Positions 1 to 16,650 of a DNA stretch of 17,356 nt are shown in pieces (positions within the stretch are counted from its first letter, which is position 1; every line of letters begins with the position of its first letter). A program made the translations under genes and the position numbers. The stretch lies in contig JANKJI020000004.1 in assembly GCA_024626585.2 (NCBI GenBank), positions 122,178,132 through 122,195,487 on the forward strand, read 5' to 3'. The notes beneath the pieces were generated by a model. That model had not been told where the DNA came from. It worked only from the letters and a program-made list of their open reading frames with translations, and did not search any database. This DNA comes from Ginkgo biloba. Taxonomy: Eukaryota > Plantae > Ginkgophyta.

Positions 1-1803
1 CTAGCAATGCTTTCAGAATTGTGAACGGATGCCGTGGTCTCTGAAATTTATCCAAGGTTGATTGTTGGTCTTTCTAAAACTTAATCGTATCCAATAAACA
101 GGTATGTCAAGCCAATAGGGTATCTTGTAAGGTCTACAAAATTGAAAATTATCATCTTGATTTGTTCCTCATCTTTGTTCGTCAAATCTTAATCATATTT
201 CAGAACAAAGCCAAATAATCTACCAGATCTCCAAATCCAGCATAGATGATTAGTCCAAATCAATTATCGACACTCATTACAGTGGATTATTCAACAGCTG
301 TGCGTATGTCATCAGACTACCTAACAATGATTGACTATTCATCTTTATTGTGCCCACACTTCAATAACTTGAATAATGGGCTCTGTTGAACACTATTTGG
401 TGGTATTTTTATAGCAATATCACTTTCTGACCAATACCTTCCAATTGCTCCTCACTTCCCACGCCTTGATGCCTGAAAATCAACCATAACAGCCCGAAAA
501 ACAACTTTTGCCTCAACTTGATGCACCAAGCTTTCTTCCAACACTAGTTCCGTCCAAACTCAATAGTTGTACTCCAAGAATTTGCTCGTATATCTCTTGC
601 ACCTTATTCCTAATATTTGGGCAGAGTAGCAGTNNNNNNNNNNNNNNNNNNNNNNNNNNNNNNNNNNNNNNNCATTGGTTTTTCATTTCTTTGATCCCAT
701 TTTCCACCACTGCAAAATTTTGATCTACCTTTTCAGAACTTTTATTTGATTCTTTTATGGTGTCACTCCTCACAGGATAAGGGAGTAGATTTTCACTCTT
801 TTGCTGACATTAAGAACGCCCCTGACTTCATGATATTTAGCAAGCCATCAAAACAGCAACCAGGATCACAATATATAGANNNNNNNNNNNNNNNNNNNNN
901 NNNNNNNNNNNNNNNNNNNNNNNNNNNNNNNNNNNNNNNNNNAACTGCACTGTTAAAACCTCCAATCCAATTGCAGACTAATGCAGTCCAATTGCAACCA
1001 GTGTGATCTTCCCTAACAGATGAAATCTTGGTAATTACCAGGGATCACCATAGTAGTTACCAACAGATAGTTATCAGGTAATCATGGCTGTTACAATGCA
1101 ATTTGTCCTTTCAACATTTCTTGCAATTCACTTCCAAAAGTCTGAACATAAACATCTAGCCATCGGTTGCTTACCACGTGATATGTGATCTTAGCATCAA
1201 TAGGCAACTTTCATTCTGTTCATCTTTGGACAGGGTTCATCAAAAATATCTACAGCAAATTGCCTGCCAGTCGAACATAGTTAGATCATTATCCCTCTTC
1301 AGTTTGTGACTGCAGAATCCTTGGAGGCAACAAAACCAATGTTAGCAATTTTCTGCCTTAATGGAAGTTAACTATCATGTATGTACCAAGTCTTGCCACC
1401 TATGATCAATGCCATCTATATGTACAATCCAGTACTCAGTCACACCCTCATCAATAAATCAATCATTACACATAAATACAATAAAGTACACAATTGAGAC
1501 GAGAAGATTCCATTATATTTATCACAAATATAAAAATTCAAACTATCTCACTGAATATGAATACTCCAACAGCTCTCACATAATACCATAGTATGACAAG
1601 TTACTTAACTAAAGTAATTAGACAGTTAGGACATATCATCAAACTTTTACAATTACATCTCAATAAACTTGTTATTAACACATCAAATGACTAACCACTA
1701 TCAGCTAGTTAATGATTACTTTAATGATCACTAACACAAACATAAGCAAGAACAATGGATAAGATAAATAATGCTGTAAGCATGCTTCCTACAATTGGAT
1801 CTT

Positions 1804-1945
1804 CAAATGATTATAAATACAAATGGATAGTTTTTGTTCAGCATGACGATGGATAGATTATGTATGATGTCATCAAATCATTCTAGAATTATGCATGGAT
1901 AATTTATGTTCAGCATTAGATGGCTAATTCATGTTTGTATGCAAT
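1804..1945. repeat. Degenerate ~70-bp tandem duplication
   Basis: ATGGATAGTTTTTGTTCAGCATGACGATGGATA at 1823 versus ATGGATAATTTATGTTCAGCATTAGATGGCTA at 1895. Each is preceded by CAAAT(G/C)ATT. Confidence 0.7.
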
Positions 1946-2165
1946 GGTGATGAGACTCCAGATCAAAAAGTCATGAACATCGGCGAGCAGCAGTCTTATC
2001 NNNNNNNNNNACCGAAAATAGATTTCGCAAAGTAACAAAAAAGAATTTGCAAAGTAACGAAAAACTATAATAGAGATAAGAAAAATGAATTGCTATCAAC
2101 AACGAATAATAAGGTTCAAAAATAAAAGTCGATAAGAATCAATAAAAGTTTACAACATATCTTGA

Positions 2166-2230
2166 TCTCTCAACATCCGAAAGCATTTCGCTCTTTATGA
2201 GCTCATCAGTGGACAAACTTGCTTGAGAGA
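2166..2230 (-). ncRNA. Hammerhead ribozyme motif, type I topology with minimal helix III (possibly degenerate)
   Basis: Minus strand reads UCUCUCAAGCAAGUUUGUCCA-CUGAUGA-GCUC-AUAAA-GAGC-GAAA-UGCU-UU-CGGAUGUUGAGAGA. Both catalytic core boxes are exact and flank a perfect 4-bp helix II. Helix I is formed by UCC/GGA, CA/UG and a perfect 8-bp UCUCUCAA/UUGAGAGA, with a bulge on the 5' strand. Confidence 0.75.
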
Positions 2231-2250
2231 GAAAATGAGAATGTGAAACC

Positions 2251-2258
2251 TTTATATA
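2251..2258 (-). promoter_or_regulatory. TATA box of the LTR-like unit
   Basis: GTATATAAAGG followed by pyrimidine-rich CACATTCTCATTTTCTCTCTC, a typical plant LTR core-promoter layout. Confidence 0.5.
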
Positions 2259-4199
2259 CAAGTTAAAAAGCATCAAAGTGCATTTGTAAAGAAGGTCGGT
2301 TGCGAGAGAGCTCACAAATTCCTTTGCAAAAGTTAAGGGAACAGTTTTAAGCTTAGCAACTTAAGGATTTAAGAAGTTGTTTTCTCCCAAAGGGCTTTTG
2401 GATGGCCGAAACACCCTATCTTTTGGATGTGGCATTATTTTTCCTTTTCTTTTCACTATTTGANNNNNNNNNNNNNNNNNNNNNNNNNNNNNNNNNNNNN
2501 NNNNNNNNNNNNNNNNNNNNNNNNNNNNNNNNNNNNNNNNNNNNNNNNNNNNNNNNNNNNNNNTTGTCGATGTGCATGTTAAGAATTTTAACTATTGGAT
2601 GACATTCTTCATCGAATTTTCTATTGAATGTTCTCCTTTATCATTTTACTGTTGGAATTTTTTCTCTTGTTCTCATTTTCAAGGCTTCGCTTATGGATTT
2701 TAGTCTATTGAGCTTGTGCATGAAGTTTTTTTTTTACTATTGGACTTTGTTCTTGAATTCACTATTGGGCATTTTTTTGGTCACATGCACTTGGTGGTCC
2801 TTTGAATCTCTCTATTGGAGAAAATCTTGTGGCTAGGTTGAGGTAACTTCTTGTGATTGATTCCCAAACGTCTTTTGTAGATTCCTTGAAGTCGGATCCA
2901 TTTAAAGACCATTTGATGGCCATAGGTTGTGAAGGATTCTGTTATATTATGCAACTATATGAATTTCTTGTATTAATGCAATTGATATTGCATGTTCAAC
3001 ATATCCCTCATCGAAGAGGGAGATGGCTCCAAATCTTCTTATGTGTTGCAAAGATGTGTTGGTTCGGTCTTATGGAGTGCCAGAAATTATTAGAAGCTCA
3101 TAAGATGATAGAGAAGACAACACTGGAGTATTCCAAGCAAGCACCATGCATTAGTCTGTTCATATAGCATTGGTGGCATCGAGCTTCTCTCTAGTGCTTG
3201 TTTGGCTCTTCGATAGAGGTTCATTAGTTCTTCTTCTCTTGCTCCATGACGGACGAGATTTTTTGTTTGAGGTTTTCTAGTGAGGTTATTCCTTTTCTTC
3301 CATAAATACTCTACTGTGGGCACTAGTTGGTCTCAGCCTAACGAACCTACACATAGCCGATCCGATGCAAATTTTGTCGATGCCCTGTGACTCTAGTGTT
3401 GCACGCGCCACTGTGGTGGTTTTCGTGGCGATTCAACCATCCATTCTGGCCAAATGGAGACCATTGTTGTGTATCAATTGAAGCAGCCCTCTGAAATTGC
3501 TCATTTATCGAGTTGTGTGACTCCTAGTGCCGCCAATCCACGCTATCCGTTAAAGTCGGTGCCCATCGAGCCCGCCATTCACTAAAACGAGTTGCAAATC
3601 CGCCATCATTCACCGAAGGTGCCGTGCAGGTTGCGCGAGTTGATTCAACCTGTTTCATTCAAACAAATTTTCAAAATGTTTTTTTTTTNNNNNNNNNNNN
3701 NNNNNNNNNNNNNNNNNNNNNNNNNNNNNNNNNNNNNNNNNNNNNNNNNNNNNNNNNNNNNNNNNNNNNNNNNNNNNNNNNNNNNNNNTGTCATTATTCA
3801 TCATCCTTAATGGGACTACTACTTACAAATCATCCCTATGAAAATTCAGAGAGCATATGAATGGTGTAAATTTAGATCTGTCTCAAGAAAAAGAATAAAC
3901 ACAGTTTCCTTTTAAAGGATCAAAACCATACAGTGGTTGTAATTAGGAAACTCTGTAGTTGCAAGACTAGCTTCTAACAAATTATAGAGAACCAAATAAC
4001 TGCAGTTAAGCATAATCTCCAAAATGAAGAAAAGAAAATATACTAAATTGAAAATTGCTATAAGCACAAATTGAATTCAGAGATACATCTTCATAACTCT
4101 CCATCAGCAGAAAATCAATAATAGAACAAACCCAATGCTCAATAATATAACAAAGGAAGACAAGGAAACAATGGAGAAGACACTCAGATGGGGACAAAC

Positions 4200-4268
4200 C
4201 TTGCCACGACAGACAGCAAAGAAGACAGCACCAGAGGAACTAGCATCATTCAATTTAGCCAGGAAGTC
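4200..4268 (-). CDS. RTEL1: RTEL1 exon, start of helicase motif V
   Basis: TTTTCCAG acceptor. Encodes [23 protein letters not shown]. Donor AAG|GTTTGT. 69 nt. Confidence 0.95.
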
Positions 4269-7200
4269 CTGGAAAACAACTTTTTAAGTTGAGTTGGATT
4301 GTGCAAAGGCACAAAATAATGCTTCAGATATTTAAAAATATATGTATACAAAAAAAATGTTAGAACTGAATTAATGCCAAGATTAACATCAGAAGATACA
4401 TAAAAGCCAACCTCATTGGCATAATTGAAGAGAGAAGATTGCTTGGGTTCCACAACTGGTTGCTTGTGCTTGCAAATCCTTTCCCAAATTGTCCCTGACT
4501 CTGAGATATAACCATGTACATAATAGATTAATGCTTCCATGAAGGAAGTTCAAGTTCAAAATAGAATTCTTTAATTTAAGAGCAACAATTAAGTTAACAA
4601 ATATTTACTCACCACAGTTTGCCAACATTCAACACACTGATTCAATAGGTAGTAAGATGGGAAGAAAACAAGGAGCCCATCTGGGACAATGCGAGCGAAA
4701 TTCACTGTAAAAAAAAGTCAGATTANNNNNNNNNNNNNNNNNNNNNNNNNNNNNNNNNNAAGCCAACAAGCAAACCTCTATACCCCCTGGTGGGGATGAA
4801 AGAGTTGCTCCTAAAAGTCCCAATCAATTCCACTGTAAGGTTACCGAATTACCAATTGTATTGCCAAGCTCTTGTTTGTACTCCACAGAATCACGTGTCC
4901 GATAAGATGAATTCAACGGACGGCCAGATGGCCCACAAGGAACAACTCCAACCCAGATTTGATTTGAGTGTATCACATGGGGATTCTCCAAGCGTACATC
5001 AAAAGGCCTGTTGGATAACAAGCATGCACATTTTCAAACTACAATATCGAGCAATACAAGGCTAATAAGTGTATTCAATCAGCCGGATTATATAAATATC
5101 AATGGATGAATAAATGCAAAATGGGCTTTCTAAAGAGCAATGTAATCACATACAAATTTAACTCCAAAGCAAATGATTCGAGAGGAGCTAAAGTGCCAGA
5201 TGTCAAAATGATAGACCGTACACCCAATCGGGCAAATTCTTCCATAGCGATTCCCGGGTTAAAGCACCACCAGCTCAGCATCCTTGACCCTTTCCCTAGT
5301 CATGAGTTACAATAAAATAGGAATGTAAATAGAAATCACACACTACTGCTCTCAAACTAGAAATATTTTCCCTTCTTTCATTTCAATGCAAAGTGTACAT
5401 GAAATACTAGACTCTAAAATGCAGGGCAAAAAGCTACTAACCTCAATCATGCTACTATATTTGCACTAAACACATTTTACCTAGCCTCAAAAGGCAGAAA
5501 TTGGGTATTGAAATATCTACAATGATACATTCAATATGAATCCAAAAAACTGTCTCAACATTTGTGTGTGACCTTGATTTGAAGAAAAACGATTTTTTTA
5601 GTAATTATTAAGCTCTCTGAATAAGATTCAAATACAGCATGTAAAAAATGATGGCAAAGGGACTCATAAAAAGCTTCTTCAAAGTGTTAATTCTTGGAGG
5701 CCAATGCGGTTACAATCACCATGCTTGGTTATCGGAAACCTAGTGCTTGTGCTAATACTAAACNNNNNNNNNNAAGAATGCATCCTATCCTGTCATAGGA
5801 TCAACCAACAGTGTGACTTCTAAGAAGTATGGCCATATCATGCAATAGTCAAAGGGACTTGTATGTTTCGTGGTCTGCCAACATCCAACCACATACAATT
5901 ACAAAATGATGTCACCCTCATATCATCTATTAAGGATACCACCCCCAACATAAAAGTATCATCCCTTAGTGGACCTTCAAAGATCAATCTTCCCCACCCT
6001 ATAAAATCAATCCTCTCCACCCATTGATCCACAAAACCAAACCTCCCATTGAACCATAGAGCATGGAGCAACTGAAGCCCATCCTTGACCTAATAATATA
6101 GTCCAACAATCCCCATGACTTTATTTTCATTCTTCTAGCTTGTCANNNNNNNNNNNNNNNNNNNNNNNNNNNNNNNNNNNNNNNNNNNNNNNNNNNNNNN
6201 NNNNNNNNNNNNNNNNNNNNNNNNNNNNNNNNNNNNNNNNNNNNNNNNNNNNNNNNNNNNNNNNNNNNNNNNNNNNNNNNNNNNNNNNNNNNNNNNNNNN
6301 NNNNNNNNNNNNNNNNNNNNNNNNNNNNNNNNNNNNNNNNNNNNNNNNNNNNNNNNNNNNNNNNNNNNNNNNNNNNNNNNNNNNNNNNNNNNNNNNNNNN
6401 NNNNNNNNNNNNNNNNNNNNNNNNTAAAACAAGTCAGCTGAGCTTAGGCTTGAAGAGTATGCGACCAATGGGTGAGGCATTCTATAAAGATAACTAAATT
6501 TCTAGAATCCTTTGCGCTCGACAAACTCCAAAACAACAAGGTGACCTTCCAGAGGAATAGAATTTCCAAGTCACAGTTCTCAAGCATGTCTCCAACATAG
6601 GACCAAAGTAAATTTCAAAGTTCTCTAGCAAGCATAAACTATTTCAAAAATCTCCAATCAACTTCAACATCCTCAAAATGCCAAATCATGGTTGTTTTCT
6701 AACCTCCTAGAGGCAAGGCAAAATAGTAGAAAACCCCAAAAATGCAAGACAAAGTGGTCTACAATAGGAAGAATTCCATTAGAGACCCAAAAATGCAAGT
6801 CTTTGACCTTAGAGGTCTCCAAATAATAGGGTGAAGTTGAAAATCATCTCCCAAGTTGATTCGCAATTGAAGATGGGTGACCCAAATCATTAGATTTATG
6901 AAGATGATATTTGGAGGTGAAAGTAGATGAAGAAAACATTCATCCCCTTCTAATGAGGCTCTCTGCTCCTCTTACGTACATTATGTGCCCATTCTCCTCA
7001 AGTTGAACTTGATTTTAGGCCTCCTAGCCATCTTGTGGATATAGAAAGGTGTTCCTTAGCTGCTAAGTAGGCCCCACCCCAATTTCTAAGGCCTTGGGTC
7101 CTCTTAAAGCCATCCCCTTAGCGTTGTGGCCAATTTACAAGACTTCCTTAGGGGATAGAAGCTTTTTCAACTAACTTCCAAGCTAACTGCTACCTTATCG

Positions 7201-14099: not shown

Positions 14100-16409
14100 G
14101 CTTGCTCAAGTAAGGACCTGGTTTTATTTCCACTTTCTGCAAAAGCAAAATAGAAAAAATGTAAATTTCCATATACTGCAGGCACATTATACAAAACACT
14201 GAATGGAACAAAATGTGGCAAGCCACTCAGTTTGAGAAGGCAACCTCCCAACAGGTAATGAATCTTCAACTTCAAATAACATGAGCATGTAAGGGTTCAC
14301 TGGACAAAGTCTCAATGCTTGAAAGTGGGGATTATGACAAAAGGGAAGGCATAGTTTCAGCTCCTGGCATGAACTCACAAAACTCCATCAAAGTATATTA
14401 GAAAAGATGGGGCTGTGCTAGGTACCAACGTGATTTTGACATGATACACATTGTTATGTTCCGTGTTGATAAAACCCTTTATATTCTTAGATATAAAGTG
14501 CAATAGGTCTAAAAAGGTGATACTCTATATTTGCATTAGTATACTTGCTTTTATTTAATAAAAGATTGACATGTTGACATTCAATATACTTTTGAATTGA
14601 ATGGAACAAGATGAAACTCATGTTTCGTTATCACACAAGGGAGAAAATCAGTTATCAAGAAAGACAGAGGTGTTTCCATATGTTTACAAAATTTATGGTG
14701 CTGAAAGATTGAGCAGCTGATGTCAGCTAAGCTCTGTTAAAATTGTTGGGATGAATGGTCTTGTTGTGAAATCATATATGGAATTTTATACTATGAAATA
14801 TATAATGACCTTTGATAAGAGGTGCTATTACACCTCAATCATGATATCCAAACACCACGATTGAGTTGATCATATCTTNNNNNNNNNNNNNNNNNNNNNN
14901 NNNNNNNNNNNNNNNNNNNNNNNNNNNNNNNNNNNNNNNNNNNNNNNNNNNNNNNNNNNNNNNNNNNNNNNNNNNNNNTATTCTTAGGATTTATATGAAA
15001 TATTATAGTTGTATTAACAACTATAAAGTATTACATTAAAAAAGCTAATAGAAGAATTTTTGAGGGGATTTAAAAGATCACATCTTACACTCTTAAAAGA
15101 ATCAATTAAGACCTCAAATCAACTAAAGCCTAGATTTTATATTATCTATAGTTTTTCCTAAGCCTTATAAATATTGTAATCTAACCCTCCTATGGAGATA
15201 ACAATTTTGCAAATCATGTGTGTTGGGCCTTAGATGCCTATGCAGTTAACTTCCGTCATGGAAATGCTCTTTTGAAGGATATGCTGCTTAATGGACTTTA
15301 AGTAGACAGAAGGTGTGCTGATCAGGATGATATTTTAACTAGACTGGCTATTGTATAAGAGATATCCTGACTGTCCAGGCCAATGCTCCCAAGCCAGAGT
15401 GACTTCATGGAAATCCATAGGCAGCCTGATGGCCTGCACACCCAGTCGATGCCCATATGTTGTGCTTATAGCCCTGGCAAGCATTCAGGGAGAACCATCA
15501 AGAACCAAGAGCTGAATTCCCTGGAAAATCTCCGTTGGTCGTGTTTTGAAGACCAAGTTGGTGATTGAGAAGTGAGAAGCAAGTTTGTATGCGGTTGCAA
15601 TGATTGCACTTGTGACTTCTGTTATACATTTGGATTATGTATATGTAGCATTTTCCAGCTGCAGCGGTTTAATCTTCTTTGAGAGGGTGGCCAGTGGGGT
15701 CAAAAGACTAGAGCAATGGTTGGAAGGCTAATCCATTGTGATTTTCCCTACTTGAAAGATAAAGAAATCAGATGAATTTTCACCTCCATTACCTTGTGGT
15801 GGCAGTATCAAGAGAACATGACTACTGTGGTGATACACTCTGTATATTGCAGATCTTGTTTGATAGCAAGACCTAAGAACTCTTGGTGTCAGTGAAGAAT
15901 AGTGGCAGTGACATTTTGTCAAACATTTCATAGGAAGCTTTCCACTGTGCCAAAAATGCCAAGGGGATCAGTGCAGACAGCAATTGAAGGCTGGTGTCCA
16001 AAGCTAGACACAGCAGTGGATGCATTTCCTAAAATGGTTGGTAGGAAGCACACCACCTGAACAAAGTCCTCAATTCAGAAGATCGGTATCAAACCCATTT
16101 TCATACCCCTCAATTTACTAGAGATTGAAACATCAAGTTTGACTCTATTCATAAAAACTATTGTCAATTGCTTTTTCTTGAATATGCTTGTAGTTCTTTC
16201 AAAGGATAACCAGTGCTTAAACATACATGTTGAAATTTGCAACTGAATACCTTAAAATTACATAAAATTCATATGTCAAAATGGGTTCAAAATGGTCTAT
16301 ATGGAAGCTGCTCTGAATCTCATTTGTGAATCTTTAAATGATTCTGAAATCCGAATTCATAGAAGAAAGTTATGCCCATTTTACTGTGTTGCGTCTTCAA
16401 TGAAGATCG

Positions 16410-16650
16410 AGTAGTTTGGTGCCGAATCCCTCCTATATGTTTTCTTAGAAAGATTAAGTAGTTTGGTGTTGAATCACTCCTATATGTTTATAAGGAAGTT
16501 GCAGCAGGTCAGTGCCGAACCCCTTCCCAATTACAGATAATACCCATGAAGGAAAACTTTACCCAATCCACATTGAATCCCCTCCCATAGTTGGGCAACA
16601 AATCCATGTTGCTAGGTTGGCGCCAAATATCTCCTCCTAATTCGGCACCA
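16410..16650 (+). repeat. ~47-bp degenerate tandem repeat (3 clear copies plus weaker ones) with an inverted core copy
   Basis: AGTAGTTTGGTGCCGAATCCCTCCTATATGTTT at 16410, AGTAGTTTGGTGTTGAATCACTCCTATATGTTT at 16457, AGCAGGTCAGTGCCGAACCCCTTCCC at 16503. ATTCGGCACCA at 16640-16650 is the reverse complement of 16417-16427. Confidence 0.8.

Follow-up and report, generated by a model that had tools for sequence, protein, structure and literature searches.

A probable type I hammerhead motif, decayed in the copy at hand, near the 3' end of a high-copy repeat in an RTEL1 intron of Ginkgo biloba

The question raised by this locus is whether 65 nucleotides on the minus strand, within what looks like an intron of a protein-coding gene, are the remains of a ribozyme or only a string of letters that resembles one. 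The window, by which we mean the whole 17,356-nucleotide stretch of Ginkgo biloba DNA that was analysed, had been read in a first-pass annotation as containing a hammerhead ribozyme with the boxes CUGAUGA and GAAA on either side of a hairpin GCUC-AUAAA-GAGC, and these letters were present on the minus strand with the spacing described. The two core boxes, CUGANGA and GAAA, are parted by the helix II hairpin as they are in hammerheads, and helix II consists of the pairs G-C, C-G, U-A and C-G, giving the minimum of 4 bp with the G10.1-C11.1 closure expected. After GAAA the strand of the window copy reads UGCU, U2181 and U2180, and A2186 can pair with U2181 as A15.1-U16.1, so placing U2180 as H17 at the cleavage site and leaving a helix III of a single A-U pair closed by the loop UGCU. 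The letters that follow T2180 on the minus strand, from 2179 to 2166, are CGGATGTTGAGAGA; in RNA reading, CGGAUGUUGAGAGA, they make up the 3' strand of helix I.

When helix I was checked pair by pair, all eight distal pairs between 2230-2223 and 2173-2166 were Watson-Crick, the UCC/GGA stretch of the proximal helix formed, and positions 2210 and 2179 made an A·C mismatch in the window copy; each of these three features had been claimed beforehand. The annotation had also drawn a bulge followed by CA/UG pairs, and here its pairs were real while its register was not the best one. A simpler register pairs 2210-2215 with 2179-2174, of which five of six pairs form in the window; beyond these the 5' strand bulges by 7 nt (2222-2216) before the eight distal pairs begin. 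The classical type I layout comprises a helix I of 6 bp, a helix II of 4 bp and a helix III of 1-2 bp with a palindromic loop of 2-4 nt (PMC4209133). The motif has the open end at helix I, the 6-bp proximal stem (5/6 in the window and 6/6 with the letters of the majority of copies, described below), the internal loop and the distal stem of that layout, in agreement with the type I topology and minimal helix III proposed in the first pass. The palindromic loop is absent from the window copy, in which the loop on the one-pair helix III is UGCU. The coordinates of all features are collected in Table 1.

Table 1. Features of the motif, of the repeat that carries it and of the adjoining RTEL1 exon, in window coordinates
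Feature	Position	Strand	Basis
Whole hammerhead-like motif; type I topology, open at helix I	2166..2230	-	Letters, pair check, weak Rfam clan match
Helix I, distal 5' strand, UCUCUCAA; partner 2166-2173	2223..2230	-	8/8 Watson-Crick pairs
7-nt bulge in helix I 5' strand; candidate partner of loop II (inferred only)	2216..2222	-	Pairing register; layout as classical type I in PMC4209133
Helix I, proximal 5' strand; 2210 A (majority G), 2214 G (majority A)	2210..2215	-	Pair check and read contigs
Core box CUGAUGA	2203..2209	-	Letters; no majority-level difference among those listed
Helix II hairpin, GCUC, loop AUAAA, GAGC; 4 bp	2190..2202	-	Letters, pair check
Core box GAAA; A2186 is A15.1	2186..2189	-	Letters
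Helix III loop UGCU (2185-2182) and U16.1 (2181)	2181..2185	-	Letters, read contigs, self-duplex energies
Predicted scissile bond, U17 (2180) / C1.1 (2179)	2179..2180	-	Hammerhead numbering
Helix I, proximal 3' strand, CGGAUG	2174..2179	-	Pair check
Helix I, distal 3' strand, UUGAGAGA	2166..2173	-	Pair check
Window A, majority G; A·C becomes G-C	2210	-	Majority letter in 63% of X1 (2936/4682), 92% of X16 (248/269), 100% of X20 (29.7/29.7)
Window U, majority C; loop III becomes CGCG	2185	-	Majority letter in 92-100% of depth (X1 7485/8164)
Window U, majority G; loop III becomes CGCG	2182	-	Majority letter in 91-97% of depth (X1 7411/8164)
Window G, majority A; G·U becomes A-U	2214	-	Majority letter in 85-100% of depth (X1 3703/4139)
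High-copy repeat block; motif near its minus-strand 3' end; assembly gap of ~100 N inside	2161..2797	-	Read-contig depth
Candidate TATA-like octamer ~20 nt upstream of helix I; a subfamily also has a TATA-like string	2251..2258	-	Letters; loose-end consensus at 2265
Purine-rich tract inside the repeat	2436..2452	-	Letters; without LTR pair or PBS
Last RTEL1 exon in the window; GT donor 4199-4198 opens the motif-bearing intron	4200..4267	-	tblastn, splice joints, exon/intron depth

How readily such an arrangement arises by chance depends strongly on how much of it is counted. For the bare pattern CTGATGA-N6-30-GAAA, chance alone would supply 0.5 occurrences per window. Random sequence of matched composition (40 Mb) yielded 0.075 matches per Mb per strand to a descriptor comprising the core, helix II and a one-pair helix III, and none of these matches had at least five of the six helix I pairs as well. 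Extrapolation gave, for a motif of the grade found in the window, about 6e-5 per window and about 16 across a scan of ~4 Gb, values that the distal 8-bp helix lowers further. For a motif with all six proximal pairs and a palindromic loop, the grade of the majority of copies, the expectation was ~0.09 per ~4 Gb and far smaller with the distal 8 bp. Taken alone, the window copy is only modestly beyond chance and is weak evidence for a ribozyme. The check with Rfam models suggested in the first pass, when run on the window, did not identify a hammerhead: the best alignment, to Hammerhead_3, scored 21.2 bits against a gathering threshold of 48.5. At gathering thresholds there was no match anywhere in the window; the alignment arose in permissive mode (E 0.024 on 221 nt), where a lower-scoring match from the same clan was suppressed, and it was the decayed window copy that was scored. 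The other permissive matches (SNORD89, Z199 and sR39/42; E 0.66-9.5) we regard as chance snoRNA-like hits. The hammerhead fold of the window copy, at -15.6 kcal/mol, is not its minimum-energy fold (-17.7 kcal/mol), and the region gave no signal of thermodynamic stability (z = +0.26).

More was learned from other copies of the same sequence. Contigs from three runs belonging to three separate studies (X1, X16 and X20), together with raw RNA reads, were mapped to positions 1-6000 of the window. Within the 65-nt motif four differences between the window copy and the majority of copies were listed, at 2210, 2185, 2182 and 2214 (Table 1), and none of these majority-level differences fell in CUGAUGA, helix II or GAAA, although the list may hide minority variants and such conservation of the core may reflect the youth of the family rather than selection. 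Three of the four (2210, 2185 and 2182) are the structural defects of the window copy itself, and at each of them the majority letter repairs the defect; by a rough count, the odds that three of four random differences would fall on some six defect positions with the right letters are ~2e-4. The majority letters in loop III are CGCG, which with the flanking A15.1 and U16.1 make the palindrome ACGCGU, with a self-duplex energy of -7.5 kcal/mol compared with -1.7 kcal/mol for AUGCUU of the window. The palindromic loop on a one-pair helix III was thus a property of the majority copies, accounting for more than 90% of the depth in all three runs.

Two of the three lesions, G>A at 2210 and C>U at 2185, are CpG transitions, and the third, at 2182, is G>U. 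CpG transition is the usual direction of decay in methylated repeats. The first-pass annotation had taken the window copy to be slightly decayed, and the restoration of both the first helix I pair and the loop III palindrome by the majority letters bears this out; its suggestion that a CG>CA deamination lay behind the A-C pair likewise held, most copies reading G at 2210 in a CpG. Its proposal for the ancestral loop was right in expecting a palindrome and wrong as to which one, the majority loop being neither UGCA nor AGCU, each of them one change from UGCU, but CGCG, two changes away. The cleavage triplet UUU that it named is that of the window copy, the majority triplet being GUU. The NUH rule permits U at position 17, yet natural hammerheads with this letter are rare and slow. 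Judged by its letters, the majority motif is a complete classical type I hammerhead, in which every core nucleotide is present, helix II has 4 bp and helix I runs through 6 bp, a bulge and a further 8 bp.

The motif lies in a repeat block whose copies are numerous. Summed contig depth in X1 was 8164 at 2182, 4682 at 2210, 3832 at 2245 and 971 at 2392, then ~550-660 over 2614-2800 and 13 at 2954, whereas single-copy contigs had depths of 5-11; at least 33 distinct X1 contigs covered the motif with the majority letters at 2182 and 2185. These depths imply that the Ginkgo biloba genome has on the order of 10^3 copies of the motif. Depth summed over contigs is only a rough measure, and the gradient is broken by a diverged stretch at 2259-2310; even so, the rise in depth toward the motif end suggests a family anchored at its 3' end and composed of 5'-truncated copies. 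The family looks young and uniform, and is nearly uniform within the motif. Contigs broke at 2798 and at 2152-2168, with loose ends at 2168. These loose ends showed that the window copy follows the family sequence only as far as ~2161, while other copies run at least 18 nt beyond this point, which indicates that truncation or divergence has also affected the 3' end of the window copy. Neither a second motif nor another copy of the repeat block was present in the 17-kb window, and the joints listed in the read contigs included no back-joint from the motif end; no tandem partner was seen.

Several other observations concern this block and its surroundings. Within the block, 2570-2800 contains sub-repeats spaced ~136-145 nt apart and sharing the motif ...CCAATAGT..., and other copies have back-joints and inserted letters in this stretch, so that the number of sub-repeats varies from copy to copy. 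Over 2011-2460, X10-X15 and X18, from two other studies of the same organism, held 33-57% of the sampled words as compared with 93% in X1-X7; this shortfall may reflect allelic divergence or an indel at the insertion in other accessions. In a search for an empty site, the sequence of a loose end at 2163 was found nowhere else in the window. A pattern scan for paralogues in metagenomes returned four matches, all GC-rich and apparently coding DNA, which we rejected as chance matches and not hammerheads; the same scan of genome contigs and of viral contigs gave 0 matches, as did the protein-word route and an exact-protein look-up. A coding exon across the motif was considered and rejected, the 58-aa open reading frame there having neither a Pfam match nor relatives, and a tRNA-derived SINE head was rejected in the same way, there being no tRNA-like sequence in the window. 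The open reading frames flanking the block contained no reverse transcriptase, GIY-YIG remnant or other Pfam domain.

The block had been presumed to lie in an RTEL1 intron, and this placement was confirmed from several directions. By tblastn, RTEL1-like exons run along the minus strand from 13850 down to 4185, with 65-81% identity to angiosperm RTEL1 from Liquidambar, Quercus, Citrus and Rubroshorea, and no later RTEL1 exon was found by the same method within 1-4185. A 2179-nt mRNA contig from X16 joins exons at 4267/4411, 4704/4853 and 5006/5153, and this spliced contig extends for ~425 nt that are not contained in the window. RNA depth in X16 was 26 on exons and fell to 0-1.4 in the bins just past the exon that ends near 4200. 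Because a GT donor follows that exon, RNA depth drops there and the mRNA continues beyond, we conclude that the motif lies in the sense orientation ~2 kb into a long RTEL1 intron that is spliced out. There was no pile of read ends at 2179/2180 among the few raw RNA reads mapped (8), and in X16 RNA the repeat was no richer than its intron flanks relative to its DNA copy number. The window copy, which is solitary and degraded, is probably inactive and most likely an inert passenger in the RTEL1 intron; its practical meaning for the locus is modest, that of a degraded passenger in a gene that is spliced normally.

Some details of the assembly and of the neighbouring sequence also came to light. 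The run of N at 4493-4612 inside RTEL1 stands for 27 real letters, as the X16 RNA contig bridges 4492 to 4613, and exon 4411-4704 is continuous and in frame across it (82 + 27 + 92 = 201 nt). The 10-N gap at 2001-2010 is really ~4 nt, a single-copy X16 contig over 1788-2152 having 6 fewer letters. The stretch 2798-3511 is low-copy and not unique, with contigs ~86-87% identical to it (X16 over 2798-3186 and X1 over 3164-3511); no protein domain was found on either of its strands, and it points to a paralogue or a divergent haplotype. At 2938-3051 on the minus strand there is a non-significant similarity (E 2.4) to RTEL1 residues ~670-708, in the right orientation, which is probably due to chance. 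A second, unrelated multi-copy repeat occupies 5801-6000, with an X1 depth of 133 and many loose ends at 5865 and 5961, and 16403-16535 consists of three tandem copies of a ~47-nt unit, the second and third 88% and 60% identical to the first.

The explanation that we favour, with a probability of about 0.72, is that the window holds a decayed solitary copy of a type I hammerhead that a short non-coding repeat carries close to its 3' end, the repeat being present in about a thousand copies, most of them with a complete motif. For the narrower statement that the family carries a genuine hammerhead motif of which the window copy is a decayed member, we consider the case likely to about the same degree. 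From these features we infer dimeric cleavage, a role in the life cycle of the element and the inactivity of the window copy, as follows. In a monomer the helix III of the majority copies, one A-U pair with the loop CGCG, would be too weak to maintain the active fold. A double hammerhead could form instead, by pairing of ACGCGU with ACGCGU between two copies carried on a single multimeric transcript or on separate ones. Cleavage of such a dimer would fall after the U equivalent to 2180 and would give a 5'-OH and a 2',3'-cyclic phosphate, which is the mode of action of the amphibian satellite, axolotl HHR_Amex1 and Penelope-type motifs. The likely role of this cleavage would be the processing of retroelement RNA to unit length. 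We propose that the mode of insertion was 3'-anchored and 5'-truncated, as for a non-LTR or Penelope-like element, which would fit the rise in copy depth toward the motif end. The window copy, having lost the first pair of helix I and the palindrome and having no partner within 17 kb, would be inactive, in keeping with its being tolerated on the sense strand of a gene that is expressed.

Three other explanations were weighed against this one. The string could be a chance look-alike, that is, an ordinary plant repeat such as a SINE, a MITE or an LTR fragment that contains hammerhead-like letters, was never a ribozyme and is uniform only because it is young. The number of window-grade motifs expected in a scan of ~4 Gb allows this, as do the subthreshold Rfam score, a hammerhead fold that is not the minimum-energy one and RNA reads with no pile of ends. 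Against it, the majority sequence has every sequence feature of the class at once, a coincidence expected well under once per scan, the departures of the window from that majority fall on its structural defects, and the combination of a palindromic tetraloop with a helix I of 6 bp, bulge and 8 bp is specific to a known subclass. We therefore consider a chance resemblance unlikely. A plant LTR retrozyme, in which the block would be an LTR with a polypurine tract and a TATA box and the hammerhead would be of type III or of an unusual kind, appears to us less probable again. The known hammerheads of dicots reside in retrozymes, the best Rfam alignment was to Hammerhead_3, and the block has both a purine-rich tract (2452-2436) and a TATA-like box (2258-2251). 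That alignment, however, places A·A at 15.1-16.1 and leaves helix I with just 2 bp, and two of its five helix III pairs are lost with the majority letters, for which reasons the type III reading was rejected; in addition, neither a second LTR nor a direct repeat was present in the window, the surroundings of the block contained no tRNA-Met PBS, and depth climbs steadily toward the motif end, whereas it should be flat over an LTR.

The remaining alternative is that the window copy is still active, or has been co-opted, and cleaves the RTEL1 pre-mRNA within the intron in the manner of the intronic type I hammerheads of amniotes. It lies in the sense orientation in an intron of a gene that is expressed and spliced, and its core boxes are intact. 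Nevertheless, the first pair of its helix I is A·C, its loop III is not palindromic and gives a self-duplex of just -1.7 kcal/mol, there is no partner copy in the window, the repeat to which it belongs has about a thousand copies and is no conserved single-copy element, and the spliced mRNA continues past the intron that bears it. We regard continued activity or co-option of this copy as very improbable, and the least probable of the explanations considered.

On the favoured reading, a decayed type I hammerhead in a high-copy repeat, the closest relatives in architecture are found among animals. The amphibian satellite-2 hammerhead and the axolotl HHR_Amex1 have a one-pair helix III with a palindromic tetraloop and need two copies for efficient cleavage (PMC7229834, PMC6155905). 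Like them, the present motif is of type I, its helix II measuring 4 bp and the 6 bp of its helix I leading into an internal loop and a distal stem, and the majority copies share the one-pair helix III with a palindromic tetraloop, in a context of low GC. Unlike them, it resides in a plant, with no tandem array seen in the window, its loop II (AUAAA) and its bulge have no obvious match to the conserved nucleotides of the tertiary contact, and its position 17 is U. The repeat block, at more than 600 nt, also differs from the units of animal non-LTR retrozymes, which are 170-400 nt long. With the hammerheads of Penelope-like element (PLE) pseudo-LTRs, which are min-HHRs or, in Selaginella PLEs, canonical type I motifs, it has in common a weak or palindromic helix III near the 3' end; PLEs are often 5'-truncated, and the depth gradient of the repeat fits such truncation. 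In contrast to PLE pseudo-LTRs, no reverse transcriptase or GIY-YIG remnant adjoins the block, and in contrast to animal min-HHRs, in which helix II usually has 7-8 bp and helix I is shorter, the motif here has a 4-bp helix II and a longer helix I.

Two further groups share the setting of the motif rather than its architecture as a whole. Like the LTR retrozymes of plants, the repeat is non-coding, multi-copy, embedded in a plant genome and provided with a hammerhead that has a TATA-like box upstream; it departs from them in having a motif of type I rather than type III, no LTR pair, no PBS and a low GC content. Like the hammerheads in introns of the amniote genes RECK, CTCL and DTNB, the motif is of type I and in the sense orientation within an intron of a protein-coding gene; those hammerheads, however, are single-copy and ultraconserved, whereas the present motif has degraded and belongs to a family of about a thousand repeats. 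The helix II string of the motif had no match among the papers searched. The ribozyme class and its architecture are known, and what appear to be new are the host lineage and the repeat family.

In reviews up to 2024-2026, classical hammerheads of type I, whose helix III is weak and palindromic, belong to animals, where they occur in satellites, non-LTR retrozymes and PLEs, and type III hammerheads belong to the LTR retrozymes of flowering plants; PLEs have been described as absent from angiosperms (PMC8557442). A motif of the animal type in about a thousand copies, in a plant whose RTEL1 is angiosperm-like, is at odds with this picture. One bolder possibility is that a plant, which would be a flowering plant by the similarity of its RTEL1 and by a roughly estimated genome size of ~0.5 Gb, derived from single-copy depth, hosts a living system of the animal kind, in which a non-autonomous type I repeat that acts as a dimer, either a non-LTR retrozyme or a PLE pseudo-LTR, is mobilised by Penelope-like reverse transcriptases. 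We entertain this only tentatively and would expect it to prove wrong rather than right. The origin of such a system might lie in horizontal transfer, the route by which conifers obtained their Dryad elements. If this possibility were true, it would break the rule that type I hammerheads belong to animals and type III to plants, and would also contradict reports that angiosperms lack PLEs. If the copies of this repeat do cleave, then retroelements bearing ribozymes of this kind would be either older and more widespread in the green lineage than the present picture allows, or one of them would have crossed between kingdoms.
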